The position numbers and the translations under genes are program-made. From the NCBI GenBank assembly GCA_003427395.1, contig BFEA01000003.1, positions 6,674,189 through 6,738,188 on the forward strand: a stretch of 64,000 nucleotides of DNA, given 5' to 3'. A model generated the notes under the pieces. It saw only the letters and a list, made by a program, of their open reading frames with translations, was not told the DNA's origin and ran no database searches. Of the stretch, positions 7,116 through 44,001 are shown piece by piece (within the stretch, counting starts at the first letter, position 1; the number at the start of each line of letters is the position of its first letter). Source of the stretch: Chara braunii (taxonomy: Eukaryota > Plantae > Charophyceae).

Positions 7116-10100
7116 GCGCGCGCGCGCTATACCAAGTACTGACCTGCGAAAGGTGGTGCTTTGATGCAGGTGCGGACGTGCTGAAGACAAAGCTGGAGCA
7201 AGGGCTACGCAGGTAAGTCTCAGGTAAGTCCTCAGGCCGCCATCACCATCTCTCCCTCCCTGCACTGCTCTACCGTATCAGTGCCCAGCGCTGCAGACTA
7301 GTCCTATCGTCGACTACTACTCCGCTACTGTCGTCTGAAGTATGCCTCCTCGATCCTCGACTCAAGAATGAGGAACTGAGGCCGGACCCAGCTATATGTA
7401 GCACTGGGTTGGCCTCAGCCGCTAAGTCCTGGCGCTCAAACTGAGGCTGGGCCTCAAAGTTTGGCGCCCAAACTGAGGCTGCTCCAGCGCCTACCGAAAC
7501 GACGCGGCCTCAAAGTCAGGCCTTGGCGCCAAAACGCGCGCCAGGGCCTGTACTCAAAACGAGGCCTACAGGGCCTCTTCCTGGTACCGGTCCTACTCGG
7601 CCTAGACTCGGCCTACCAACCCTACGGACCCTGCTGAGGGTCGAAACGATGCAAACCCTACACCTACGGACCCCTAGTCTACCTGGTCGGGCCCTGTTGG
7701 GCCCGTGTGGTACTGAGTATGCCACACTCCCCCCTTCTTGAAAGACCGAGCTTACCTGCGAGGGCGAAGCTGTCTGTTGGAGGGAGGGACTGAAGTCCGG
7801 GTGGGAGGCTGTGCAGCTTCCGTGGCTAGCCGTTTTTTCTCATGATCGACGTAGACATCTGGTGCGGAGGCTTGCAAAGCTGCCCAGGAAATCCATCGCG
7901 TGTCGTCGCGTTCGCACCATTTGAATGTGACCTTGTACTGCATTGGCTTGTTGTCGTGCTTGCGATGCGTGATGACGCGGTCGTCGGTCGACTTCCTGAT
8001 GACCATCCATGGAAGGAGGGTCTTGCGATCGTCGGCCCGGGAAGTCATCGCTCTTGGCTGGGGTATATGTGGTCAGCTTGGAGGCGTGGAAAACCGGGTG
8101 CATTGTGAGGTGCGGCGGATTTCGATCACAAAGGAGGGGCCATCGGGCTCATCGCCCGCGGCTGATGTGACGGGCCATGGTCCAAACCACTTTGGAAGTA
8201 GCTTGCGGGATACATCTTGTTCAAGCGCAAACTCCTTCATGGAGACCCAAACAAGGTCGTCGGCGCGGATAGGGCATGGCACGCGACGCCTGTTAGGTTG
8301 CTGTTGCATGCGGACTTGAGCCTTTTGCATGTTGGCGCTGGCTTTAGCCAGCAGGTCCCTATACTTCCGAACGGAGGCGGGAGAACAAGCGGCGTCAATG
8401 TCTGCAGTCCTTGGAAATGGAAGATCAGCGAAGATACGGCCTTTCCTGCCACCGTGGTGCAACTCGAAGGGAGTCACGCCGATCGCCGGGTGCAACGAAG
8501 TGTTGTAGGCAAATTCGATGTCGGGGAGGCGGTCAACCCAATCCTTCTGATCCGTACGGATGAGTGTGCGAAGTATTACTTGAGCGGCTTGATGTGCCCC
8601 CTCCGTCTGCCCGTCCGTTTGCGGATGCCGAGCCGAACTTGGTTTCATCTCGATGTCGGACTCTTTCATGAGGGAGGTCCAAAATGCCGACATAAAACGA
8701 CTGTCGCGGTCGCTGACGATGTCTTCCAGAACACCGTGACCGCATATCCAGCCAGTGTGTAAAAGGCGCGCAAGTTCAGGAGTCGTGGCGTAGTACTTGC
8801 AAGGAAGAAATCGTGCGTACTTGCTCAAACAGTCAACGACCATGAGAATGTCGTGGTGCCCGAAACAGTCGCGGGGGAACTGGCCGATGACGTCCATAGC
8901 AATGGAGAGGCCGGGTTCCCGCGGGATAGGCAACAATCGTAACTCACCGTAGGGGTTGTGATTGTGGGGTTTGCTTCACTGGCAAACTTCGCAAGAGTCG
9001 CAATACCGAGTGACGTTGGTAATGAGGTCCGGCCACCGGAATCACTGCTGAAGCCTTGCGATCGTACGGTTGACTCCGAAGTGGCCGGCGAGTCGCGAGT
9101 CGTGGCATCTGCCGAGGAGGTGAGTCCGTAAACGACGGTCGTGTGGGACGCATAGTGAGTACTTGCCTCGTGAGTGAAGAAGCAAGTAGCCATCGACGAC
9201 GCGATAATGGCTGGCCGGCAGGTAATCCGAGGATAGTTGCTCGTAGAGTGTGGCGTATTCCGAATCGGACTTGTATGCTCGCACAAAATGCTGATGAAGG
9301 GCGTCGTTGAAACCGGACGCGTGGTGAGTCAATGCACAAAGATTTGATCTTCGCAAGAGAGCATCCGCGGCTCGGTTGGAGAGGCCCGAAATGTGTTTCG
9401 GTGTGAATTCGAACTGATCGATGAAGTACATCCATCGAGCGATCGTGCTGTTCACCGTGTCTTGCGTCTTGTAGTAGGTCAATGGGTTATTGTCCGTAGC
9501 CCAAGTGAACCTACGACGACCGAGGAGGAAATGTTGCCAAGGCTTGAGTACCGTGAAGAACGCAAGCAACTCCTTCTTCCGCGCATCATCAACCAAGTTG
9601 ATGGGGGCACCTTTTGGCTGAAGTACTCAATCGGATGCCAATCTACTCTGTCGTGTTGTTCCAAAACTGCACCCATGCCGTAGCCGGAAGCGTCCGTAGT
9701 CACTCTCGTAGGCAAGGTGGGATCGTAGATTCTCAGGACGGGAGCGAGGAGCAACGTCGTCTTAAATTTGTGGAACGAACTGCGGACTTCGTCGGTGAAC
9801 TGGAAGGGCACAATTGGAGACTGCAATCTTGACAAGGACGAGGCGATCCGTGCGTATCCTTTGATGAAGCGTTGCTAGTACCCGGCCAATCCCATAAAAG
9901 AACGGACTTCCGTGGTGTTGGTCGGTTCTAGCCACTCTTGGATGGTCTTGATCTTGTCCGAGAGTGGACGGATGCCTTGCGGCGTCACAAAGTGGCCCAA
10001 GTACTCGAGCTCTTGCTGCGCGAATTCGCACTTGGCTCGGTTGGCCTTGTACTTGACCGTACGTAGCCTGTCCAAAACAGCACGTAGATGCACGATGTGC

Positions 10101-10968
10101 TCGTCCAAAGTCCGGCTATACACCAAGATGTCATCGAGGTAGATGAGCACGAACCGGTCCAACATGTCGCGAAACTCTATTGTCATTGCCGCTTGGAAGG
10201 TGGCCGGGGCATTCGTGAGGCCGAATTGCATTACGACCCACTCGAAGTGCCCGTACTGTGTCTTGAACGCGGTTTTGTATCGATCTCTTGGATGGATCTC
10301 GAGCTGGTGGTAACCGGCCTTGAGGTCCAACTTGGAGAAGTACTTGGCGCCGCCCAATCGTTGGAGAAGATCGTCGATGCGTGGGAGCGGGCCGACATTC
10401 TTAATTGTTTGAGCATTAAGCTTACGATAGTTAATGCATAAGCGCAGTTCCTTGTTCTTCTTCCGGACGAAGAGAACGGGTGCACCGTAGGGCGAGCAGC
10501 TAGGGCGAATCCAGCCCTTGTCAATGAGGTCATCAAGTTGTGTTCGCAGCACTTCGAGTCCCTCCTCGCTCATGCGGTAAATACATTCGCGCGGAGGTAC
10601 GGCCCCATCTTCGAGGATGATCTCATGACGAATTGGCCGATTCGGTACGATTCCGACGGGGGCTTCAAAGACGTCGCCATAGGAGTCAAGAAGCTGTAAA
10701 ATGCGTGGATCCAGTGGTTGTTCCGCCGCTGGCTCGTCGGGAGGGGGGAGGGCTTGCAAGAAGCAAATGCCCATTTCCTCCACGTCGTTCCGTGCGATGG
10801 AGTTGCGAATGCTTGCCGCGGAGACCACGTGACAACCAATCGAAGGGTGAGGTGGGGGTGTCGTACATGGCCCAAGTATCCCGTTCCGGTCACGAACGTG
10901 AACGGTGCGGCGGTAGAAGTTCACCGGGTGGTCCTCGCTGCGCAGCCACGACATGCCCAAAATCATGT
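7059..10968 (-). mobile_element. Partial duplicate of gypsy element B (3' LTR part, PPT, chromodomain, IN, RNase H, RT); probable assembly artefact
   Basis: Appears identical to 19623-23532 at offset 12564, including all stops and frameshifts in the ORF track. Bounded by a single N (7058) and a Nextera adapter. Confidence 0.9.
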
Positions 10969-10999
10969 TCTTATACACATCTAGATGTGTATAAGAGAC

Positions 11000-11001
<2 letters not shown>
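10969..11001. other. Nextera mate-pair junction adapter (Tn5 mosaic ends), library contamination
   Basis: TCTTATACACATCT (10969-10982) followed by AGATGTGTATAAGAGACAG (10983-11001). Confidence 0.97.

Positions 11002-11053
<52 letters not shown>
11002..11053. repeat. (GT)n microsatellite
   Basis: Direct reading. Confidence 0.95.
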
Positions 11054-11056
<3 letters not shown>

Positions 11057-12219
11057 ATCTCTCATTTCCCCCCTGTTCACTTCAGCCTCCGTCAGTCCGT
11101 CTATCCATCATATCCATCAGTGTTTCGTTGGCTTCTGTCCAATGTTCGATAACTGAATAACATCACTCCGTCCATCTGCACCATCCAGCTGCTCCATTCA
11201 TCTGCTCCATCTATCCATGCATCCGTCCATCCATCCATTCCTTTATCCACCCACCCATGTAGCCGTCATATCACCAATCTGCCCATTCAAAAATCCGGTA
11301 TGTAAATTCTGTGAGTCCGTCCTTCTATTCCGTGGATGTGTATCCAGCATTCAAATTCTGTAATGCGACACTACCGTGGTTGGACTGGGGTAATGCCAAT
11401 TGTGCAGGTGTCCACTATGCAGGTTTCCACTGTGCAGGTTTCCAATGTGCTGGATTGGATAGGTTACTAGTTAGAACGTTTCCTAGCCATGGTGGCAACC
11501 CCTCGCCATGGTCATAGTGCAACCTGTGACCCACCACCACCCCCTCCTCCTGCCCTCCCTTCCCACCACATGTCAGACTCTGTGGAGAGTTCATCTTCTG
11601 TAATTCTATTACCAGTTGTTTGCGAAGAATTATTAGTGCACAATTCTGGATTTGGGGCGTTTAGACATTGTTGCAGACCTATAGCGACAAGAGGAGGAGA
11701 GGAGGAGGAGGAGGAGGAGGAGGAGGAGGAGGAGGAAGAGGAGAGAGGAGGGGACCCCAGGGGAGAGGAGGAGAGGGGAGGGGAGGGAAAACGAAGGACG
11801 GGATAGAGAATGAGGAGGAGAACAGCGAACTAACATTTCGTTAGAAATGACATTTCTTTTCATTGCACGAAATAAAATGTCCAAAATTTCCCAGGTTCTT
11901 TGTGTACCTTTTAAAAGCATACTAGTAAACACCCAGAAGGAAAGCCATTTCACAAACAGCAATCCTTTGTCATAAAATGTACAGGAATTAATACTAAATC
12001 ATGCCTTATAGTGTTATTTACTACGCCACTCCGGTCGCCCGGCCATGCGGCACGGTTGTACAGTCCGAGCAAGTCGCCCGGGGGTCACCTGCATGGGGCA
12101 TTCTGTGCAGGCAACAATCAGCCATTCTTGTTTTGGGGGGTGGAGCACCTCTGCGCCCACCTGCCTCTGTTCGAATCCGGGCTGACTCTTTGCTTATGAC
12201 ACACTCTCAGGTTTAGCCT

Positions 12220-20315: not shown

Positions 20316-22399
20316 TTACCTGCGAGGGCGAAGCTGTCTGTTGGAGGGAGGGACTGAAGTCCGGGTGGGAGGCTGTGCAGCTTCCGTGGCTAGCCGTTTT
20401 TTCTCATGATCGACGTAGACATCTGGTGCGGAGGCTTGCAAAGCTGCCCAGGAAATCCATCGCGTGTCGTCGCGTTCGCACCATTTGAATGTGACCTTGT
20501 ACTGCATTGGCTTGTTGTCGTGCTTGCGATGCGTGATGACGCGGTCGTCGGTCGACTTCCTGATGACCATCCATGGAAGGAGGGTCTTGCGATCGTCGGC
20601 CCGGGAAGTCATCGCTCTTGGCTGGGGTATATGTGGTCAGCTTGGAGGCGTGGAAAACCGGGTGCATTGTGAGGTGCGGCGGATTTCGATCACAAAGGAG
20701 GGGCCATCGGGCTCATCGCCCGCGGCTGATGTGACGGGCCATGGTCCAAACCACTTTGGAAGTAGCTTGCGGGATACATCTTGTTCAAGCGCAAACTCCT
20801 TCATGGAGACCCAAACAAGGTCGTCGGCGCGGATAGGGCATGGCACGCGACGCCTGTTAGGTTGCTGTTGCATGCGGACTTGAGCCTTTTGCATGTTGGC
20901 GCTGGCTTTAGCCAGCAGGTCCCTATACTTCCGAACGGAGGCGGGAGAACAAGCGGCGTCAATGTCTGCAGTCCTTGGAAATGGAAGATCAGCGAAGATA
21001 CGGCCTTTCCTGCCACCGTGGTGCAACTCGAAGGGAGTCACGCCGATCGCCGGGTGCAACGAAGTGTTGTAGGCAAATTCGATGTCGGGGAGGCGGTCAA
21101 CCCAATCCTTCTGATCCGTACGGATGAGTGTGCGAAGTATTACTTGAGCGGCTTGATGTGCCCCCTCCGTCTGCCCGTCCGTTTGCGGATGCCGAGCCGA
21201 ACTTGGTTTCATCTCGATGTCGGACTCTTTCATGAGGGAGGTCCAAAATGCCGACATAAAACGACTGTCGCGGTCGCTGACGATGTCTTCCAGAACACCG
21301 TGACCGCATATCCAGCCAGTGTGTAAAAGGCGCGCAAGTTCAGGAGTCGTGGCGTAGTACTTGCAAGGAAGAAATCGTGCGTACTTGCTCAAACAGTCAA
21401 CGACCATGAGAATGTCGTGGTGCCCGAAACAGTCGCGGGGGAACTGGCCGATGACGTCCATAGCAATGGAGAGGCCGGGTTCCCGCGGGATAGGCAACAA
21501 TCGTAACTCACCGTAGGGGTTGTGATTGTGGGGTTTGCTTCACTGGCAAACTTCGCAAGAGTCGCAATACCGAGTGACGTTGGTAATGAGGTCCGGCCAC
21601 CGGAATCACTGCTGAAGCCTTGCGATCGTACGGTTGACTCCGAAGTGGCCGGCGAGTCGCGAGTCGTGGCATCTGCCGAGGAGGTGAGTCCGTAAACGAC
21701 GGTCGTGTGGGACGCATAGTGAGTACTTGCCTCGTGAGTGAAGAAGCAAGTAGCCATCGACGACGCGATAATGGCTGGCCGGCAGGTAATCCGAGGATAG
21801 TTGCTCGTAGAGTGTGGCGTATTCCGAATCGGACTTGTATGCTCGCACAAAATGCTGATGAAGGGCGTCGTTGAAACCGGACGCGTGGTGAGTCAATGCA
21901 CAAAGATTTGATCTTCGCAAGAGAGCATCCGCGGCTCGGTTGGAGAGGCCCGAAATGTGTTTCGGTGTGAATTCGAACTGATCGATGAAGTACATCCATC
22001 GAGCGATCGTGCTGTTCACCGTGTCTTGCGTCTTGTAGTAGGTCAATGGGTTATTGTCCGTAGCCCAAGTGAACCTACGACGACCGAGGAGGAAATGTTG
22101 CCAAGGCTTGAGTACCGTGAAGAACGCAAGCAACTCCTTCTTCCGCGCATCATCAACCAAGTTGATGGGGGCACCTTTTGGCTGAAGTACTCAATCGGAT
22201 GCCAATCTACTCTGTCGTGTTGTTCCAAAACTGCACCCATGCCGTAGCCGGAAGCGTCCGTAGTCACTCTCGTAGGCAAGGTGGGATCGTAGATTCTCAG
22301 GACGGGAGCGAGGAGCAACGTCGTCTTAAATTTGTGGAACGAACTGCGGACTTCGTCGGTGAACTGGAAGGGCACAATTGGAGACTGCAATCTTGACAA
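20316..22399 (-). pseudogene. Element B RNase H, integrase and chromodomain (frameshifted)
   Basis: TTDASGYGMGAVL; CHDSRLAGHFG; IAMDVIG...IVSDRD...HPQTDGQTE; PKWFGPW; DRVITHRKH...QYKVTFKW. Confidence 0.92.
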
Positions 22400-22438
22400 G
22401 GACGAGGCGATCCGTGCGTATCCTTTGATGAAGCGTTG

Positions 22439-24303
22439 CTAGTACCCGGCCAATCCCATAAAAGAACGGACTTCCGTGGTGTTGGTCGGTTCTAGCCACT
22501 CTTGGATGGTCTTGATCTTGTCCGAGAGTGGACGGATGCCTTGCGGCGTCACAAAGTGGCCCAAGTACTCGAGCTCTTGCTGCGCGAATTCGCACTTGGC
22601 TCGGTTGGCCTTGTACTTGACCGTACGTAGCCTGTCCAAAACAGCACGTAGATGCACGATGTGCTCGTCCAAAGTCCGGCTATACACCAAGATGTCATCG
22701 AGGTAGATGAGCACGAACCGGTCCAACATGTCGCGAAACTCTATTGTCATTGCCGCTTGGAAGGTGGCCGGGGCATTCGTGAGGCCGAATTGCATTACGA
22801 CCCACTCGAAGTGCCCGTACTGTGTCTTGAACGCGGTTTTGTATCGATCTCTTGGATGGATCTCGAGCTGGTGGTAACCGGCCTTGAGGTCCAACTTGGA
22901 GAAGTACTTGGCGCCGCCCAATCGTTGGAGAAGATCGTCGATGCGTGGGAGCGGGCCGACATTCTTAATTGTTTGAGCATTAAGCTTACGATAGTTAATG
23001 CATAAGCGCAGTTCCTTGTTCTTCTTCCGGACGAAGAGAACGGGTGCACCGTAGGGCGAGCAGCTAGGGCGAATCCAGCCCTTGTCAATGAGGTCATCAA
23101 GTTGTGTTCGCAGCACTTCGAGTCCCTCCTCGCTCATGCGGTAAATACATTCGCGCGGAGGTACGGCCCCATCTTCGAGGATGATCTCATGACGAATTGG
23201 CCGATTCGGTACGATTCCGACGGGGGCTTCAAAGACGTCGCCATAGGAGTCAAGAAGCTGTAAAATGCGTGGATCCAGTGGTTGTTCCGCCGCTGGCTCG
23301 TCGGGAGGGGGGAGGGCTTGCAAGAAGCAAATGCCCATTTCCTCCACGTCGTTCCGTGCGATGGAGTTGCGAATGCTTGCCGCGGAGACCACGTGACAAC
23401 CAATCGAAGGGTGAGGTGGGGGTGTCGTACATGGCCCAAGTATCCCGTTCCGGTCACGAACGTGAACGGTGCGGCGGTAGAAGTTCACCGGGTGGTCCTC
23501 GCTGCGCAGCCACGACATGCCCAAAATCATGTCGAACTGTGTGTCCAATATGTCAAAGGACACGGCCTCGCGTGCATGGGGGGCGAAGTACACAGGGACG
23601 GAGTCAACACACCGGTCAATGGACTTGTGCATATGACCGTCGGCCAACGTGACTTGCGTGTGAAGTCTTGGCTGATGTAGTTGCAAGTAGCTCCACAATA
23701 AATCAAGGCGCTGCAGGTCACCTTCCCGATCTGAATGTGGACGTAGAGTAACGGTGCGTCGATGTTGTCGTACCGTTGCGTGGCGTACTCGTGGTCAATC
23801 TTTGCAATGTACTCGTGAAGGTCAACAACCGTTTCTCCATCTCCCATCACCGGAGTTGGTACTGCAACGTGCAAGTAGTTGTGCAGTTCTTCCATTAAGG
23901 CGTTGCAATGCGGCTTCGACAAGGAACCAGATGGGGGAAGAGGCATCCATTGGAAGTCCTCTGGCGTCAATGGGTCCAGGTCCTCAAGTCTAGACCATAC
24001 CAACGAGTCCCCGAGTAGTGTCGGTGAGGATGCTGGTTCACTTGGTGATGGTGATGAAGTCGCGCACGCACATGACTCTTGCACGTGGAGAGGTTGGTCC
24101 AAAGGCGGGACCAGCTGGACAGCATAGTCTTCGTAACTTTCGTGAAGACTGGCGACATACGCATGTTCCCCGGACCTGGAGGAGGTTGCCAGCAAGGCAA
24201 CCGTGTCCGGCAGAGTAGGAAGTGGAGTCGCCTCACTTCCCGCGGAGCTCAGTTTCCCGAGCTTTGTCGTGGACGGACGTCTTCTTTGCCTTTGACGGGG
24301 CAT
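22439..24303 (-). pseudogene. Element B protease and reverse transcriptase
   Basis: ALIYCGAT (catalytic Asp lost), DMILGMSWL, PYGAPVLFV, FSKLDLKAGYHQL, YLDDILVYS. Confidence 0.93.
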
Positions 24304-33596: not shown

Positions 33597-33655
33597 GAAC
33601 CTTGTGCATCATATCTTTGTTCGAGAGGTGGTTAACGGGTCCACTAATATTCAAC

Positions 33656-34555
33656 CAATGAACCGGTTAAGTGGTCCACCTCTTTGGTGGTAGGTCATAG
33701 GTTCAATTCCTAGTGAGTTGATCTTGGACTTCTTGTGTATAACAAGCACTAATGAACCGGTCGGACGCCCTTGCAATAGTGTTTGGTTGAAGTCTGGCCG
33801 GTGCCGTGAGTTGTCCCTCACGTGCATTCGGGTCGAGTCGAGTCTGGGTACACTGGGTCATGGTTGATCCATGCTGGGGTGGGGTGAAATGTCCCTCACG
33901 GGGCTTCACTCTCATCCCATCTCACTTTACCTATTGGTTAAGTGATCCACCTCTTTGGTGGTAGGTCATAGGTTCAATTCCTAGTGAGTTGATCTTGGGC
34001 GTCTTGTGTATAACAAGCACTAATCAACCGGTCGGACGCCCTTGCAATAGTGCTTGGTTGGCTGGTGCCATGAGTTGTCCCTCATGTGCATTCGGGTCGA
34101 GTCGAGTCTGGGTACACCGGGTTATGGTTGATCCATGCTGGGGTGGGATGAAATGTCCCTCACGGGGCTTCACTTTCATCCCAGCTCACTTTACCTATTG
34201 GTTAAGTGATCCACCTCTTTGGTGGTAGGTCATAGGTTCAATTCCTGGTGAGTTGATATTGGGCTTCTTGTGTATAACAAGCACTAATGAACCCGTCAAA
34301 CGCCCTTGCAATAGTGCTTGGTTGAAGTCTGGCCAGTGCCATGAGTTGTCCCTCGCGTACATTCGGGTCAAGTCGAGTCTGGGTACACCGGGTCATGGTT
34401 GATTCATGCTGGGGTGGGGTGAAATGTCCCTCACAGGGCTTCACTTTCACCCCAGCGCACTTTACCTATTGGTTAAGTGATCCACCTCTTTGGTAGGTCA
34501 TAGGTTCAATTCCTAGTGAGCTGATCTTGGACTTCTTGTGTATAACAAGAAAAAA
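33656..34555 (+). mobile_element. Retroposed tandem multimer (3.3 x 271 bp) of a tRNA-like unit
   Basis: GGTTAAGTG recurs at 33665, 33936, 34200 and 34471. Each unit has the B-box GGTTCAATTCC. A6 tail at 34550-34555. 15-bp TSD CCACTAATATTCAAC at 33641-33655 and 34556-34570. Confidence 0.88.
34184..34253 (+). ncRNA. tRNA-like cloverleaf in the array unit (Lys-CTT-like, not a canonical tRNA)
   Basis: Acceptor GCTCAC/GTGAGT, D-loop GG, CCAC-CTCTTTG-GTGG arm, variable loop AGGTC, T-arm TAGG-TTCAATT-CCT(A/G). About 2 nt short at the T/acceptor junction. Confidence 0.6.
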
Positions 34556-34605
34556 CCACTAATATTCAACATTTACACAGGTACTGAAGTTTTGAAAGTA
34601 GGGGG

Positions 34606-34747
34606 AAGGGGCGGAGGTTCAGGTTTTTCACCATCTTCACCACTTCAAAGTTTTTGGAATCGTCAACGTTAATATACATCTAGACTATGAAATTTCTGGA
34701 ATTTTTGGAGTGGTGAAGGTGCTGAAAATTATGAACAACCTCTCCTT
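34606..34747. repeat. Imperfect ~45-bp-arm inverted repeat (old MITE-like)
   Basis: TTTTCACCATCTTCACCACTTCAAA versus TTTGGAGTGGTGAAGGTGCTGAAAA, with outer AAGG/CCTT. Confidence 0.6.
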
Positions 34748-34994
34748 AAACCACCACTACCTCCGAGCCTGTTTTTGTCAACCCCAATTTTCACTGCGTA
34801 CCGAGTTTTGTCGAGCCTAGGTTCCGTTTTATTTCTGATCTGGTACTCTCCTGAAAAGAAAAAGAAAAAAAAGTGCGGCCAGACTTTCAAAAAACGACCC
34901 ACTCGCAGCCAAAAGAAAATAAAAGAAAAAAAACAGACACCCCTTTCAACGTGATACCTGGTAGATACCTAGCCCAAAGTCGTTGTGTGAGTAT

Positions 34995-36231
34995 TATAAT
35001 GAACCCAGTATGGCAGATACTCATCAGACGCCGAGGTACAAGTAGTCTCAGATCTGTAAAAAGTCTCCAGTTAATGTGAAGTGATATCTGAAACAGTATC
35101 TCGTTACCAATAGACGAAGAGAGTGGAGGGGGAATAGACAGAGGAGAAGGTGGAAGAGATAATTACACAAGAGTAGTCACAATCCTTCCCACTCCTTCTT
35201 CGGGCTTCCCCTCGCCTCCACGTCAACAACCAATATACAGTAACAAGTCTGATAAATCCTGATCACACAGAAGTGCCACATGGCACTCTTATCTCGCGGA
35301 GACCATGAAGACAACATCAGTATACGGTAACGACGTCAACCTCAGGTGAGTACTAGATCCCAATCATCCACAGATTCCGATCTCCCTCCTTGTCGCAACC
35401 AGTCACCTCATGTAGACAGCGTGGCCAATGCCACGTCAGCTATAGAGACATGTGGCATGCGCCACATCATCAATGAAGATAGATGGCAGCGCCACATCAG
35501 CAACACAATGCAGACAGATGGCAGTGCCACATCAGCAATGTAGACAAGTGGCATGCGCCACATTAGCCATGTAGACAAGTGGCATGCGTCATATCAGCAA
35601 TGTAGACAAGTGGTATGCGCCACATCAGCAATGCAGACAAGTGGCATGCGCCACATCAGCCATGTAGACAAGTGGCATGTGCCATATCAGCAATGGTTGG
35701 CGCACAGTAGAGAAAGCGCCAGCGTGCTGCCACAGTCTTGCGTCGTCGTGCACAGCGCCAGCGTCAAGCCAGCGTCGAGCCAGCGTCAAGCCAGCGTCAA
35801 GCCAGCGTCAAGCCAGCGTCGAGCCAGCGTCGAACCAGCGTCAAGGCAGCATAGCAAGACTGAATGTTGACCACCCGGAGACCCAGCCTTATGTTGCATT
35901 TGGCAAGGTTGTCTCGCTTCAAGTCCCCTTTCCACAGTCGTACTGATTGACGCACAGTCGAGGGTCTGGATTGTACAGTTGCAGATTTCCCCTTGGTCCT
36001 GATGTTGTCTGGGTACCTGCATACAAACAAGTGTGTGCGTCTGATCGGTGGCCTGGGCTGGGTACACTTTGACTTTGACTATTGGATGTCTGACAGTTGA
36101 CTTTAGTTAATTGTCACACGTTCAGGTCTTGAATCTTTTTGTGGGGTTCTTTTCCCCCTTCGGCCTGGGACTGAGTGCGGCCTGGTAAGGCCCTTAGACA
36201 ATCTACGAGACATACGACATGGGTTATTGCA
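34995..36231 (-). repeat. 3' LTR of element C, with internal ~31-bp and 11-bp tandem arrays
   Basis: TATAATGAACC (TG mutated)...TTATTGCA. Arrays of GTAGACAAGTGGCATGCGCCACATCAGC and GCGTCAAGCCA. Confidence 0.92.
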
Positions 36232-36289
36232 TTCCTGCCGGCCCAATTTTCGAGTTTCGTCGCAGAAAAGACATTAATTTCCTTTCAAC

Positions 36290-39200
36290 CGACATTTGTA
36301 TGTAGCAACAATGTCAGGAGCAGTAGGTAAGAGTTCTTTCTTACTAAACCAACTGGCTTCAGATGGAGGTTGAGATTTGAACTATACCTTATACTGCTTT
36401 TGTGGTCTTCCTCTGCCACCTGTAGAGAAATAGCCATGTTTCAAAATCTTCTCAACTTCATATCCTCCATTCATGGAGGGTGGAAACATAAATGGCCTGT
36501 TACGAAATTTATCTCCTTCTACATACGGTAGCAGTTTAAACGCATGGAAGATAGGATAGGTCCTTAGGTGTGGGGGTACGTCTATCCGATACGAAGGTCC
36601 ATTTGTATCCCCAATCACCTTGAGAACTTCGCAGGGTCCATAATAGACAGGCAACAGTTTTTGAGATACGTTTTTTTCTAAGGCAAATTCTTTAGACTTT
36701 ACCCATACCAGATCTCCTTGGAATTGCGATGGCCGATGATGTTTGTTGGCCTGCTCAATCATCTGAACTTGGGCTTTTTGTATATTTTCTTTTACCTTTT
36801 TAGTATCTTTTTCATACAAAACTGCAAATTCAGGGGTTCCTGGGGGTAGCCTCTGAATTTGATCCCGAGTTAAAGCATCAATGGGACGTCGAGGCTTCCA
36901 ACCTTTATGTACTGCATTAGGTGTCCTACATGTAACAGTATGTATACTGTTATTATAAGCACTAACAATTTTAGGTAAGTTCTCATCCCAATCTATTTGA
37001 TCGGGTCAGACATACATCTGCAAAAGTTGTTGGCATAGACGATTCATTTGTTCAGTTTGGCCATTCGTTTCAGGATGTCTACCTGATGACATGGTCAACC
37101 TGGTGTCATAGACTTCCATCAACTTTTGCCATTGTAGACTAGTGAACCAAACATCCCTATCAAAGACAATGGTTTTCGGGAATCCATACTCAGAAACCCA
37201 TCGCATCTGGAACTTTTGGATGACTAATTCGGTTTTGGCTTGGGCAGGCAAAGGAATGAATATAGCATACTTTGAGAATTTATCTACAATGACCATTACC
37301 TGACTGTTGCCATTTCGACTCTTAGTGAGACTCATAAAGTCTATAGAGATAGACTCACCTGGCTCACTTGGAATAGGCAATGGTCTCGGCAGTCCCAACG
37401 GATCCTAATGCATGGGCTTGTTCCCTTGACAAACGAGACAAGTCCGCACATACGTTAGTACATCCTCTTTCATTCCTTCTCATTCAAAGCGTTCCTGAAC
37501 ATCGGCATACGTCTTCTTAAAATCAAAGTAACCCTCAACATCATGGCATTCCCCAATGATTAAACTCTTGATTTGTTCTTGGTAAGGGATGCATAATCGT
37601 TCTTCGGTTTTATCCACGTAGAAGAGTAAGCCATCAGTCATTTGATACTCTGAGAATAGTTCAGGGTTCTTTCATAGGGTCCCAATAATAGGATTTCAAA
37701 TAGGATCACTCTCAAAACCCTTACCGTGCCTTACGCGTTTGTTCCTTCAGTTCATTCCCAATATCGAGATAGGAGACAATGGTTCCAAAGAAATCTGCGC
37801 GTCTGGACAAAGCATCCGCAACAACGTTAGACTTTCCTTTGATTGTTTTTAACTCAAAATCAAAGGTATCAATGAAAGCGGACCATCTTACTAGCTTATC
37901 AGAGAGTCTCGACTGTGTCTTAATCCATTTCAGAGTAGAATGATTTGAATAGACGGTAAAGTGTTTCCTTAACAAGTAGTGTTTCTAGGTGTCTAGTGCA
38001 GAGACCAAGACATACAACTCCCTTTCATAGGTAGAGTTGGTCACTTTCTCTTTTGGAAGTCTCCTCCACATAAACCCTATTGGTCTATATCCCTTACTGT
38101 TGTTCTGTTGTAGCACAACGCCAATCTCATACTGACCTGCGTCAAACGTGACGATGAAAGGAAGAGAAGGGTCAACAATCTTTAAGACAAGGTAGTGAGT
38201 CAGAACATGCTTTAATGTCCTAAACAATGACTCACAATCTTTGTCCCACAACCAAGGTTTTTCCTTCTTCAGCAGTCTTCTCATAGGAGCAACTACCAAA
38301 AGAAGTTTTTGACGAACTTTCTGTAGTAACTACCAAGTCCTGTAAAATATCTCAACTCTATTATAGTCTTAGGTTGGAGCCAGTCTCAGATTGTTGTGAT
38401 CTTCTTTTCTTCAGGCCTTAGTCCTTCTTCGTTCACTATATGCCCTAAGTACAAGACTTCAGGCTTAGCAAACTCAGACTTCTTCGGGTTTAGTTTAAAG
38501 TTGCCTTCGCGCAACTTCTGCAAAACCATTCGTAGATGTTTCTCACGGTCTTCTAGTATCTTACTATACACTAAAATGTCATCGAGATAAACTATTACGA
38601 ACTGGTCCAGCCATTGACGAAACAATTCATTCATTGACCTTTGAAAGGTCACACGTGCATTAGTCAATCCAAACGGCATAACCACGAACTTGTAGTGACC
38701 ATACCTTGTTCAAAAAGTCGTTTTGTATTGATCCTCAGGAGCCACCTCGATCTGGTGGTACCCTGACTTCAGATGAGTCTTACTGAAGTACCTGCAGCCT
38801 TGCAACTGGTCCAACAGGTCGTCAATGCGTGGAAGTGGTTCCGCATTTTTCACAATGACGGAATTCATCCCTCTATAGTCAATGCATAGTCTGAGCTCAC
38901 CTTCCTTTTTGGGCATGAATAAGATAGGGGCACCATAAGGAGATGAGTTAGGGCAAATCCATCCCTTGTCAGTAAGTTCTTGCAGCTGTTTTCGAAGTTC
39001 CTCAAGTTCTCTGGGAGACATTCGGTAGATGGGACCCTTGGGAATCTTGCTTCCGGGAATAATCTCGATCGTGTGCTTAATAGCACGCTCAGTGATTCCT
39101 GTCGGTTCAGTCTGCAAGTCCTTATATTCGTCGAGAAGTTTTTTAATAGAAGGAGGATAGGATGAGGAACACTCACCGACTCGTTTAACGAGTACCATCA

Positions 39201-39684
39201 TTAAATCCTGATCCAACTTTTTCTTCGAGACCATCGATCGGAAGCCTGGGTAACTCATACAACAGAAAAACATAGTAGAGTCAGAGCCAGACCTATGGTA
39301 CAACTTTATTGCTCGAAGGTCGGACTTCTCGTCCTTTAGTTTTACAATCTTTTCTTTGAATTTAACTTTTGGGTCGTATTCCTCATGCCAATTCATACTC
39401 AGAATCAAGTCAAAGGGCAATTTTTTCTCTAGAAGGAGGGATACTTCATGTAGGATTTTATTTCCTTCCTTAGTCCGGAAATAACACTTGACACGATCGA
39501 CGTATTGAAAGACAGTGATCGTGCTTTTGTCAGCCAGCATAGATGTGATAGGTCGAGGTAAATGTTTTACTTTCATTCCCAAATGCAATTTGCGTATTGC
39601 CTTCTCTGAAATGTAAGACCGCGTCGATCCTAGATTTAACACTGCACCAACTCGCGTTTGCGCAATCTCAATATCCGCGATCAT
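36290..39684 (-). pseudogene. Element C pol (PR-RT-RH-IN-chromodomain), frameshifted
   Basis: VLNLGST (PR, D>N), YLDDILVYS, FDAGQYEIG, ISIDFMS...HPETNGQTE, YEVEKILKH...QYKV. Confidence 0.93.
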
Positions 39685-39949
39685 TAACTCACCCTTAGAC
39701 TTTGCTTTCTTAGCCTACGAACTTTGAAGTGCTTCGAGTTCATCACCGAGTTCATCAAGGGAATCGTTCAGTGAGACAGAGCAAAGAACAGTGTCAGGGT
39801 GCTCTGGACGATGGGTTGAAGAAGAGTCATCCTCTGCCATAAGAGTTGAGAGGTTAGAAGGGTTATTGGCGCCTTAACTTTATCTACACCCTTCGATTCA
39901 GTAGGAGCAGATGCTACTCCTACTGGTTGCTCGCTTTTGGGTTATGAAT

Positions 39950-41600
39950 TAGTGGGCACCAGGCTATCACATGCCCAACGGTCCCACACTTGAGGCACTG
40001 ACAATTGTTCATTTTGGACTGTCATTCCTCACGTGGCATCCCCATCTTTTCCCAGGGCTTCCTGAACACAATGTCAAGGTGCTCGGGAAACGAGCGTGGC
40101 CTCCTTTTCTTCTTCCATTGGCCTTGGCCTCCCTTGTTAGCCATCACGGCAGTGACGTCACCCTTCCCAAACTCACTGCCGCCATTAGCTACTCCTCCCT
40201 CGGACTCGTCAATGGGTAACTTTTCTATCATCTCGTGATCGAACACGAGAAGCATGTGATCCTGGCGCTTTTACCGTCAAAGGACCTGCTTGCCATACCC
40301 ACCGACCGGTCCAAATTTCACTACTGAAGCATAGGAACCCTTCACCTGTGCGTTTATCAACTCTCGTTGGAGAGCGAGATCGTGAAATTGTCAATAATTA
40401 TACTTACCAGACTTAGCCTCGGCCACGAGTTGTTCGTGAATTGGCTCGGGCAAAGCTCGTGAGTAGATATACAAGACCTGGTTATCTTGCAAATTCAGTT
40501 CAGGTACCTGCAAAAGACGATTCACTTCACGAGACAACGCATCAACGCAAGACCAACACTTTTGTCATATTGTGGTGAGTTCGTCAAAGGTCTTGTCGGT
40601 CGTCGTTTTGTCGAGAAATCTCTCCTTAATCTTTTGGAGAAATTGTCTCAACGTGAGGGTCTTAGCCCACTCACCAATATCTTTAAAGCCAGCAGCGTTG
40701 GCCTCGGACAACACCCACTCTTTAGCCACTCCCCCCTGACACGACGTGGAGAAGGCCACATGACTCTCAGGCTCGACTGGAGCGGTGCCACAATAAGTTT
40801 GGATCTCTGCGATCCACAACAACATGTTTTCATCTTTCTTGTTGTTGTAGGTGAACGACAACTTTATTTTCATTTTTTCCTTTCTCTTCGGTTTTTCTAC
40901 CTCCTTTGGCCGGTTCTTCCTTCTTGGCGGTTTCTTCTTTCTTTCCTGTCGGTCTCTCAAGTTCTTTCTTAGAACCTTCGGGTTTCTCCGGCGTGACTCG
41001 CTTCATTGCATCCTTCATTCATTTTTCATGGGGTTCCTTCTTGACTACCTCCCCCTTGATCTCCTCCTCAATTCCTACCTTATCCTTCTCTTTCAAGAGT
41101 CTAGTCATTGTCTCCCATGAGGCTGCGTTGCTATCAATCTTCTTTTCGAGATGAACAAGGTAGACCACTAGATTGTAGAATGGATGCAAGCTCGCTGCCT
41201 GCTTCTTCGTAGTGAAATTTATGCCTAAGTTCTTCAATTATTCTCTCTTCTTCTGCTTGCGCTTCATGCTGTCTCTGGAATTCCTCAATCTTTCTTCTTA
41301 CTTCTCTCAATGTATTTTCGATTTGCCTTACGTTTTCCTCCATATCTCTTCAGACAGTTGTGGTTCCTTCCTTTCTTCTTTCTTCTTTTTTTTTCTTTCC
41401 TTTCTTTCCCGGTCCATATTTTCCAGATTCTCAGCGACATACAGGTCAAAGGTCATTCGCCCTTGCTTTATGAGGTCCTCGACTCTCTTGTCGGTCTCCA
41501 TCATCTAAACGGTTGTTTCTGCGGCTCTCAGTTCACCTTCTGCGGCACGCAGATTGAACTGATCGTGAACTAGCCGTTCAATTTCTGAATCGGCGCCGTG
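39950..41600 (-). pseudogene. Element C gag with zinc knuckle
   Basis: FTYNNKKDENMLLWIAEI in ORF 40565-40960; QCLKCGTVGHVIAWC read at ~39955-40000 on the minus strand. Confidence 0.85.
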
Positions 41601-42766
41601 TATCTCACCGAGAAGCTGGTGTAGAAGGTCGATCAAAGTCTATCTCCTCGCATCAATTTGACCACGGGTCTTTAGTTCCCCCCCTTCTTCATTAGCATAG
41701 AGGGTGAGAGTGATGGGAAAGAAGAAGAGAGGTATGAAACTTGTGAGAATAGAGGCACGCAGACATTTCCAGAGATAAGTCATTTTTCCTAGCGTGAATA
41801 TGCCGCACAATAAATAAAATTAAAAGACAAAAATAAATTTCACGGCACACCCAAGTCCTACAACAAGAAATAATCGAGGCAGATAAAAAGAAACAGCTTC
41901 GCAAATAATTTTCTAAATCTAACTTTTGTTGTCTGTTCTATGTGTGATGACGTCCTACAGCAGGTGTATAGGTACCGCAACCACGACTAGTGTGATCAAG
42001 ACAACAACACACTTGTGAGTAAACACATCAACCACAGAACAACCAATAAGTGAGTAGGTTAGCCAACACAACAACACAATCAATGGTTAGCTTCCTTCCT
42101 CTACGGTTCTACCATCTGCAGAAACAATGCAACCAAACACAAGGGCCAGCACTCGACACTACAACAAATCGTGAAGCCGTACCATCTGCCGGCACACAAG
42201 TGCACACTCGACAGTTCCTCCACAGCAGCGTGTTATGCATGCCACGTGTCACCCCTGGGATGCCAACGCAGCAGCTCTATAGAGTCTGCCATGTCAACGT
42301 CATGGACCTAAAAGGTCTACGAGGGGAGGATGCCATGTCAGCAATGCATGTCTGCAACACACACAATATTGGCATGCCATGTCAGCGCTTCATTAGCAGG
42401 CTATCGCAACACAAGTATGTACCACGTCAGATCATGCCCTGCCTGTTGAGAATGCCACATCAGCACTCCACGTCATGCCACGTAGGCAGTGAGCCACATC
42501 AGCGGTCCTGATCTCACACTTATCTCTCTCTAGCCCAGTGCCACGTCAGCCTGTTGCCAACGAAGCTCTCGCCGGTATCTTGAAATCTGCAGTGTAGCCA
42601 CGTCATCATCTTCAAGAGAGGCCGCACGCATGTGCCGTACTCAATGTTTAGACTTGCGGTATTGACCACGTGCGTTAATAAGCGTGTTTCGTCTTGCACA
42701 TGCGGCACCTCCCACTTACCTGGGTGCCACGTAAGCACCTGACAGCAGATTGAGATGAAGGAGTAC

Positions 42767-42778
42767 GCTCTGATACCA
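42767..42778 (-). promoter_or_regulatory. Primer-binding site (tRNA-iMet) of element C
   Basis: Minus strand TGGTATCAGAGC. Confidence 0.95.
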
Positions 42779-42781
42779 AAT

Positions 42782-44001
42782 TGTAATGAACCCAGTCTAG
42801 CAGATACTCATCAGACGCCAAAGTACAAGTAGTCTCAGATCTGCACAAAGTCTCCAGTTAACGTGAAGTGATATCTGAAACAATATCTCGTTACCAATAG
42901 ACGAAGAGAGTGGAGGGGGAATAAACAGAGGAGAAGGTGGAAAAGATAATTACACAAGAGTAGTCACAATCCTTCCCACTCCTTCTCCGGGCTTCCCCTC
43001 GCCTCCACGTCAACAACCAATATACAGTAACAGGTCTGATAAATCCTGATCACACAGAAGTGCCACATGGCACTCTTATCTCGTGGACACCATGAAGACA
43101 ACTGCAGTATACGGTAACGACGTCAACCTCAGGTGAGTATCAGATCTCAATCATCCACAAATCCCGATCTCCCTCCTTGTCGCAACCAGTCACCTCATGT
43201 AGACAGCGTGGCCAATGCCACGTCAGCTATAGAGACAGGTGGCATGCGCCACATCATCAATGAAGACAGGTGGCAGCGCCGCATCAGCAACACAATGTAG
43301 ACAAATAGCAATGCCACATCAGCAATGTAGACAAGTGGCATGCGCCACATCAGCCATGTAGACAGTGGCATGCACCATATCAGCAATGTAGACAAATAGC
43401 ATGCGCCACATCAGCCATATAGACAAGTGGCATGCGCCATATGTCTAGCGCACAGTAGAGAAAGCGCCAGCATGCTGCCACAGTCCTGCGTCGTCGACCA
43501 CAGTGCCAGCGTCAAGCCAGCGTCCAGCCAGCGTCAAGCCGGCGTCCAGCCAGCGTCGAACCATAGTCGAGCCAGCGTCGAACCATAGTCGAGCCAGCGT
43601 CCAGCCAGCGTCGAGGCAGCATAACAAGACTGAATGTTGACCAACCGGAGACCCAGCCTTATGTAGCATTTGGCAAGGCTGTCTGGCCTCAGGTCCCCTT
43701 TCCACGGTCGTACAGATTGACTCACAGCCGAGGGCCTGGATTGTACAGTTGCAGATTTCCCCTTGGTCCTGATGTTGTCGGGGTACCTGCATACAAACAA
43801 GTGTGTGCGTCTGACCGGCGGCCTGGGCTGGGTACACTTTGACTTTGACTGTTGGATGTCCGATAGTTGACTTTAGTCAACTGTCACACGTTCAGGTCTT
43901 GAATCTTTTTGTGGGGTTCTTTTCCCCCTTCGGCCTGGGTCTGAGTGCGGCCTGGTAAGGCCCTCAGACAATCTACGAGACATACGGCATGGTTTATTGC
44001 A
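42782..44001 (-). repeat. 5' LTR of element C
   Basis: TGTAATGAACC...TTATTGCA, collinear with 34995-36231. Confidence 0.93.

Follow-up and report, generated by a model that had tools for sequence, protein, structure and literature searches.

A tandem, tRNA-Arg-related, SINE-like array in Chara braunii with one A tail and one target-site duplication

We found that a non-coding, tRNA-related array of about 900 nt (33656-34555) in Chara braunii, made of 3.3 head-to-tail copies of a 271-bp unit, is one retro-insertion, and that members of this SINE-like family can be copied back into the genome as multimers. The array lies in a 64-kb stretch of assembly GCA_003427395.1 (64,000 nt of contig BFEA01000003.1, here called the window). 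SINEs are normally described as monomers. Our tentative preference among the possible mechanisms, which we would put a little short of even, is that a Pol III transcript, having read through a tandem and terminally redundant master copy, was retroposed in a single target-primed event. The positions of the array, its signals and the neighbouring retrotransposon are collected in Table 1.

Tandem Repeats Finder (33665-34549, period 271, 3.3 copies, 91% matches) and the repeat search (spacings of 271, 264 and 268-271) both recovered the head-to-tail organization that the preliminary description had read from the letters, and the details it listed for the array ends, the jump at GGT and the mimicry of the unit by the target were found to be correct on rereading the sequence. 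The unit phase was fixed by the block's own ends. According to the alignment and the nhmmer profile, each full unit starts with CACTAATG and closes with TATAACAAG. The array also ends in TATAACAAG, which within the array is always followed by CACTAATGAACCGGT. At the 5' end, the leader CAATGAACCGGT is followed by TAAGTGG, located about 180 nt further along the unit, giving the junction AACCGGT/TAAGTGG. The partial unit u0 (33656-33746 when taken with the leader) consists of the 3' part of the tRNA-like module and the 3' hairpin, joined to the leader at the shared GGT. Contigs from independent runs match stretches of the array exactly, and a 144-nt contig spans the u1/u2 junction with one mismatch; no assembly gaps were detected within 3 kb of the array. 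Chance or an assembly artefact as the source of the array was rejected on the basis of the repeat statistics, the independent contigs and the absence of gaps nearby.

Table 1. Positions in the window of the array, its sequence signals and the adjacent gypsy element
Feature	Position	Strand	Remarks
Left TSD copy, 15 bp, CCACTAATATTCAAC	33641-33655	+	perfect 15/15 direct repeat
Leader, 12 nt, CAATGAACCGGT	33656-33667	+	5' end of the insertion; equals unit positions 4-15, 11/12 match
Partial unit u0	33668-33746	+	unit positions ~190-271 (nhmmer profile 187-271); alignment
Full unit u1, 271 nt	33747-34017	+	6 private substitutions; alignment, nhmmer
Full unit u2, 264 nt	34018-34281	+	7-nt deletion at unit positions 42-48; 7 private substitutions
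Full unit u3, 268 nt	34282-34549	+	3-nt deletion in the anticodon-arm region; 13 private substitutions
A6 tail	34550-34555	+	sole run of at least 4 A in the array; directly abuts the right TSD
Right TSD copy, 15 bp, CCACTAATATTCAAC	34556-34570	+	perfect 15/15 direct repeat
Degenerate tRNA-Arg-like module of u2	34184-34254	+	unit positions 174-244; Rfam tRNA model end to end
tRNA-Arg-like modules of the other units	33920-33990 (u1), 34455-34521 (u3), 33665-33719 (u0, 5'-truncated)	+	
A-box-like motif, starts	33664, 33935, 34199, 34470	+	9/11 match
B box, starts	33700, 33971, 34235, 34503	+	10/11 match
Terminal 5-bp hairpin CTTGT-GTATA-ACAAG (CTTGTGTATAACAAG)	34535-34549	+	last helix of the minimum-free-energy fold
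Same hairpin closing the other units	33732-33746, 34003-34017, 34267-34281	+	
First T4 run past the array	34590-34593	+	~35 nt after the A6; where Pol III transcripts of the locus could first terminate
gypsy LTRs	34993-36231 and 42780-44001	-	1.2 kb, 89% identical
gypsy protease and RT	38710-39684	-	part of the 34993-44001 element
gypsy integrase	37009-37398	-	part of the 34993-44001 element
gypsy Tf2-type SH3 domain	36385-36819	-	part of the 34993-44001 element

The one A6 tail and the one perfect 15-bp target-site duplication (TSD), both assigned to the whole array in the preliminary description, were confirmed; placed around the entire block, they support its proposal of a single retro-insertion. 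A pair of 15-mers like this TSD is expected by chance about 0.001 times in 1.6 kb. Neither an A run nor a target copy separates the units at the inner junctions (AACAAG/CACTAAT), and more than one unit, including the tail-to-head junction, was therefore already present in the RNA template or made in the cDNA. Both the single tail and TSD and these plain inner junctions are in favor of the read-through transcript. No paralogous empty site for the array was found in the window.

We detected 26 substitutions among the three full units, mostly transitions, and all of them are private to one unit (6, 7 and 13); where the family majority is reported, the private state is the deviating one. This pattern, also in line with the read-through model, fits units that were near-identical at insertion and decayed by about 2-5% each afterwards. 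An intact TSD and tail are compatible with the age of the units: comparing 0 changes in the 15 bp of the TSD with about 3% decay of the units gave P of about 0.3, which is not discriminating.

With the phase set by the array ends, the module resembling tRNA was located in the 3' third of the unit and not at its head, where the preliminary description had placed it; the likeness itself was retained, in a degenerate form. The Rfam tRNA model aligned to the u2 module with 13.4 bits (gathering score 29), and ARAGORN detected no tRNA in the array. The relation to tRNA-Arg comes from a 22-nt probe with one degenerate base (R), drawn from the unit's variable-loop and T-arm stretch, which was found in six metagenome contigs among 241 million records, in five of them inside genuine tRNA-Arg (CCT/TCT) genes. 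The matched genes have G where the array has A, so the array matches the probe stretch at 21 of 22 positions. Identity of the module to these tRNA-Arg genes is 53-60% over the whole tRNA length, and the acceptor-like pairing is kept. The probe matches indicate descent of the module from a rare sequence variant of an Arg-type tRNA. The probe had no matches in viral contigs, and no copies of the family were present among the metagenome matches. Two of the five tRNA-Arg genes adjoin tRNA-Lys and tRNA-Gln genes.

Each unit has a B box and an A-box-like motif, always 36 nt apart, a point for the read-through model; about half or more of the family contigs have the canonical G at the B-box position. 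The insertion begins 8 nt ahead of the first A-box-like motif, at the point where initiation by Pol III is to be expected from the motif position, and this agreement weakens the earlier contrast with ordinary SINEs, namely that the insertion does not begin at the 5' end of the tRNA. The plus strand of the 900-nt array contains no T4 run, so that Pol III would not stop inside the array. Both the position of the first base and the lack of T4 are consistent with read-through.

The predicted fold of the plus-strand unit RNA is stronger than that of shuffled sequences (-112 kcal/mol vs. -86 +/- 5, z -4.9; z -2.8 for the minus strand), and the terminal hairpin stops at the very last base of both unit and array; both features are in favor of the read-through model.

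The unit is multi-copy in two low-coverage Chara braunii DNA runs, with word depth in the hundreds to thousands. Depth per fifth of the unit, summed over the three units, was about 0.6k, 1.3k, 3.1k, 5.8k and 4.1k from 5' to 3', a rough measure, as contigs were apparently placed only at their best fit. Bins containing a junction had a depth of only about 50-100, vs. about 3,000 for the last 50 nt of the unit in u0. On this profile, 5'-truncated or short copies that end at AACAAG would make up most of the family, and no more than a few per cent of the family 3' ends would run into another unit. A usual 3' end at AACAAG and 5'-truncated copies are what the read-through model leads one to expect. 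Several contigs, 9-11% diverged from the array or with variant junction sequences, also cross the tail-to-head junction, showing that multimers exist at other loci, again in favor of that model. Contigs from other copies join 33738 to 33900, 34208 to 34438 and 34236 to 34465. Such joints imply variants in which the tRNA-like module and flanking sequence are rearranged, with periods of about 110 and about 42 nt; one of these variants was also present in a run guessed as RNA. Two contigs of low depth from a run only guessed as RNA match the array, one of them across a junction.

No second copy of the unit and no similar 3' end, as a candidate partner LINE would have, were detected in the 64-kb window by blastn and nhmmer. 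The unit was absent from ten loci (239 kb) of GCA_003427395.1 sampled via twelve retrotransposon-protein look-ups. Of the ORFs of the unit, regarded as spurious, the 70-aa one had no candidate relatives, and the 79-aa one matched only unrelated repeat proteins among 1.8 billion representatives. Nine ORFs of the window were absent from the protein collection searched.

In the read-through model, taken step by step, a SINE-like family of Chara braunii, related to tRNA-Arg, without coding capacity and with a strong RNA fold, would have a putative master copy that is tandem and terminally redundant. Pol III would start at the 5'-most A/B-box module of the master and, meeting no T4, the transcript would run through all downstream units and end past an A run. 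A LINE helper may then begin reverse transcription at the short A run after the 3' hairpin (...ACAAG), and a 15-bp staggered cut would give the target duplication; the number of units may have shifted later by unequal exchange. We favor this reading because it needs the fewest unusual steps, an ordinary SINE cycle with an unusual master, and it would account for the Pol III-like 5' start, the absence of a terminator, the presence of only one tail and the near-identity of the units.

Several observations stand against the read-through model. It predicts that the leader junction is common to other copies, and a single locus has been read. The A box is poor, and the tRNA model scored below threshold. 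The TSD start is without the A-rich motif typical of L1-type endonucleases. Reads of a raw poly(A)+ (oligo-dT) RNA run were few over the module, and the junctions and first 100 nt of the unit had none. The model also leaves two coincidences as side effects. First, the 3' end of the array coincides exactly with a unit boundary, and its 5' end is no more than about 3 nt away from one (chance of the latter about 3%). Second, the TSD begins with C followed by CACTAAT, the first 7 nt of the unit (chance about 3e-4, or about 0.03%, with a few registers allowed).

The first coincidence is explained directly by template jumping, a rival mechanism that we regard as unlikely. The reverse transcriptase would reach the 5' end of a unit-length RNA (CAC...AAG) and jump repeatedly to the 3' end of another copy, and a final jump, at GGT, would have made the rearranged first unit. 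Penelope-like elements acquire their partial tandems by such jumping, and L1 its U6 chimeras. Seamless junctions would follow as well, and so would a depth at which only a few per cent of the 3' ends continue. The truncated u0 before u1-u3 resembles Penelope-like insertions, in which a 5'-truncated copy directly precedes full head-to-tail copies in one insertion, and the Chlamys clade of these elements is very abundant in C. braunii (PMC8557442). However, the Chara element is non-coding, its target is a unique-type sequence rather than a microsatellite of the (CA)n, (C)n or (TA)n kind, and the array has A6 and a clean 15-bp TSD instead of the 30-40-bp extension of Penelope-like elements. No promoter is known to start RNA at CACTAAT, the A and B boxes being 190 nt downstream, and the first template would need an A tail while the later ones would have none.

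The second coincidence, the CACTAAT target, leads to two related readings. In the broader one, which appears improbable to us, the family would be a counterpart of retrozymes, with a tRNA module and no ribozyme, able to build arrays of its own: the nicked strand of the target would pair with the CACUAAU that comes after the 3' hairpin of a read-through or multimeric (possibly circular) RNA, so that sites would be chosen by the RNA, new copies would home to the 5' end of older ones, the stagger would be fixed at 15 bp and the Pol III promoter would be restored upstream of a full unit. The terminal repeats of LTR elements, which restore the promoter, provide an analogy for the tandem form in this case.

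The narrower reading, self-homing or homology-primed growth, is in our estimate more doubtful still. Insertion would be directed to CACTAAT with a 15-bp stagger, guided by a helper endonuclease or by nicked DNA pairing with the same CACUAAU, here of a read-through RNA. New copies would land at the 5' end of old ones and produce arrays, and u0 would be a separate 5'-truncated copy with its own 15-bp duplication. Besides the start of the outer TSD, this agrees with the leader: when the last two target bases are counted (33654-33667), the match to the unit rises to 13/14 (unit positions 2-15), and this repeat stops 15 nt into the unit, the length of the outer TSD. Against it, three or four events would have occurred at one site, none leaving a tail, yet the outer event has A6; the full inner units are without a doubled 15-mer, and an extra homology-resolution step has to be assumed; and the reading is drawn from one locus.

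The preliminary description had proposed two templates, a read-through multimer and a circular RNA of about 271 nt. With no T4 in 900 nt the multimer is plausible, and the search for a ribozyme and for junction-spanning RNA spoke against the circle, which we now consider highly improbable. A circle ligated at AAG/CAC and copied several times, in the manner of a retrozyme, would suit a highly structured unit RNA and units near-identical at birth. The 271-bp tandem units at dispersed loci also fall within the genomic form of animal non-LTR retrozymes, which are tandem non-coding units of 150-450 bp, from dimers to large multimers, with TSDs >4 bp when present (PMC7229834; bioRxiv 10.64898/2026.07.22.740005). 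The hammerhead of those elements was not found in the Chara unit; in its place the Chara element carries an A tail and a Pol III module of tRNA-like type. No Rfam ribozyme was detected at E<=10 on either strand of 1.5 units of the array with permissive filters, and the hammerhead core CUGANGA was absent from both strands of the array. A circle has no 3' end and no A6, leaving the tail and the fixed 3' end unexplained, and the depth profile suggests that a linear 3' end is preferred over ends at random phase. The oligo-dT run, as described above, had no junction-spanning reads.

HDV-like ribozymes have a nested double pseudoknot with P1.1 and a catalytic C in J4/2, and cleave at their own 5' end. 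By eye, P1-, P2- and P3-like pairings are possible at the unit start, with a 4-nt J3/1 and without P1.1 and P4, and the CAAG upstream of the unit start pairs across the putative cleavage site. An HDV-like fold at this position was not supported, and no HDV-type match was found in Rfam. No Rfam family reached its gathering score across the whole 64 kb.

A monomeric SINE insertion followed by local tandem duplication is very unlikely, the least probable of the readings weighed, since the SINE arrays that unequal exchange has produced in potato, bivalves and squamates retain tails or TSDs between units (PMC11481361), the Chara units are joined without either, and the duplication would have to cover exactly the element without its tail. 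A weaker form, in which an insertion of 1.3 units was expanded later, is possible and survives as part of the read-through explanation.

The array has most of the properties of a tRNA-derived SINE, but its promoter module is weak and recurs in every unit. It shares with these elements an A/B-box-like module, the A-rich tail and long TSD (here A6 and a perfect 15-bp repeat), a 3' hairpin of the kind recognised by some LINE partners, and a dispersed family with 5'-truncated copies. The unit is also short, non-coding (ORFs without relatives) and present in many copies in the two DNA runs, although the 239 kb sampled had no copy and the insertion itself is 900 bp long. The difference is that the promoter module is present once per 271-nt unit inside a single insertion.

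Close in organization are Sm-alpha and Sj-alpha of Schistosoma, short non-coding SINE-like retroposons with a tRNA-related Pol III module, copies of which have been called tRNA-Gln pseudogenes; one family of satellite-like elements of the W chromosome closely resembles SMalpha (PMC2770079, PMC8490949). The Chara element is likewise short and non-coding, with a tRNA-related Pol III module and a tie to tandem repeats. It differs in that Sm-alpha has an active type I hammerhead in each unit, while the Chara unit is without a detectable ribozyme; the sequences are unrelated, and the Chara element belongs to a streptophyte alga. The element is therefore less isolated than the preliminary description assumed, with Sm-alpha, the non-LTR retrozymes and the Penelope-type partial tandems being closer to it.

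To our knowledge, short retroelements arranged in tandem within a single insertion were until now linked either with hammerhead ribozymes (retrozymes, Sm-alpha) or with coding elements of the Penelope-like type. The locus described here, from a streptophyte alga, has this architecture together with a Pol III module of the tRNA type, and no ribozyme was detected in it. If the tandem form is needed to place a promoter before a full unit, or if targets are picked by pairing with the element's own 5' sequence, the family would provide a simple model for the origin of terminal redundancy and array growth in non-autonomous retroelements. If it is merely a SINE with a master copy that became tandem, it would be a modest addition to the C. 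braunii repeat catalogue.

The window is rich in retrotransposons. A Ty3/gypsy element lies beside the array on the minus strand (34993-44001). Insertion of the array inside the neighbouring gypsy LTR was considered and rejected, as the array is about 420 bp outside that element. Both LTRs contain a tandem repeat of 31 nt (35430-35695, 8.5 copies; a similar repeat at 43196-43442), and an 11-nt repeat was found in the first LTR (35757-35850). An RT ORF in the window has its closest relatives among Chara braunii proteins, with up to 91% identity. Two copies of one retrotransposon segment (7900-11160 and 20464-23700) lie 12,564 bp apart and have matching ORF layouts, including an identical 163-aa ORF (8944-9435 and 21508-21999).

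Next to the array, an inverted repeat within 34606-34819 (34606-34649 and 34704-34747, 44-nt arms, 77% complementary) looks like a MITE-type hairpin. The miRNA-like Rfam matches of the region are located in this flanking repeat, outside the array; they are sub-threshold matches to plant MIR families, the top one being MIR5380 (35.5 bits vs. 150). The adjoining stretch 34718-34819 exceeds the rest of the region in abundance (word depth 17,000-35,000 in the DNA runs), and RNA reads fall on both of its strands.
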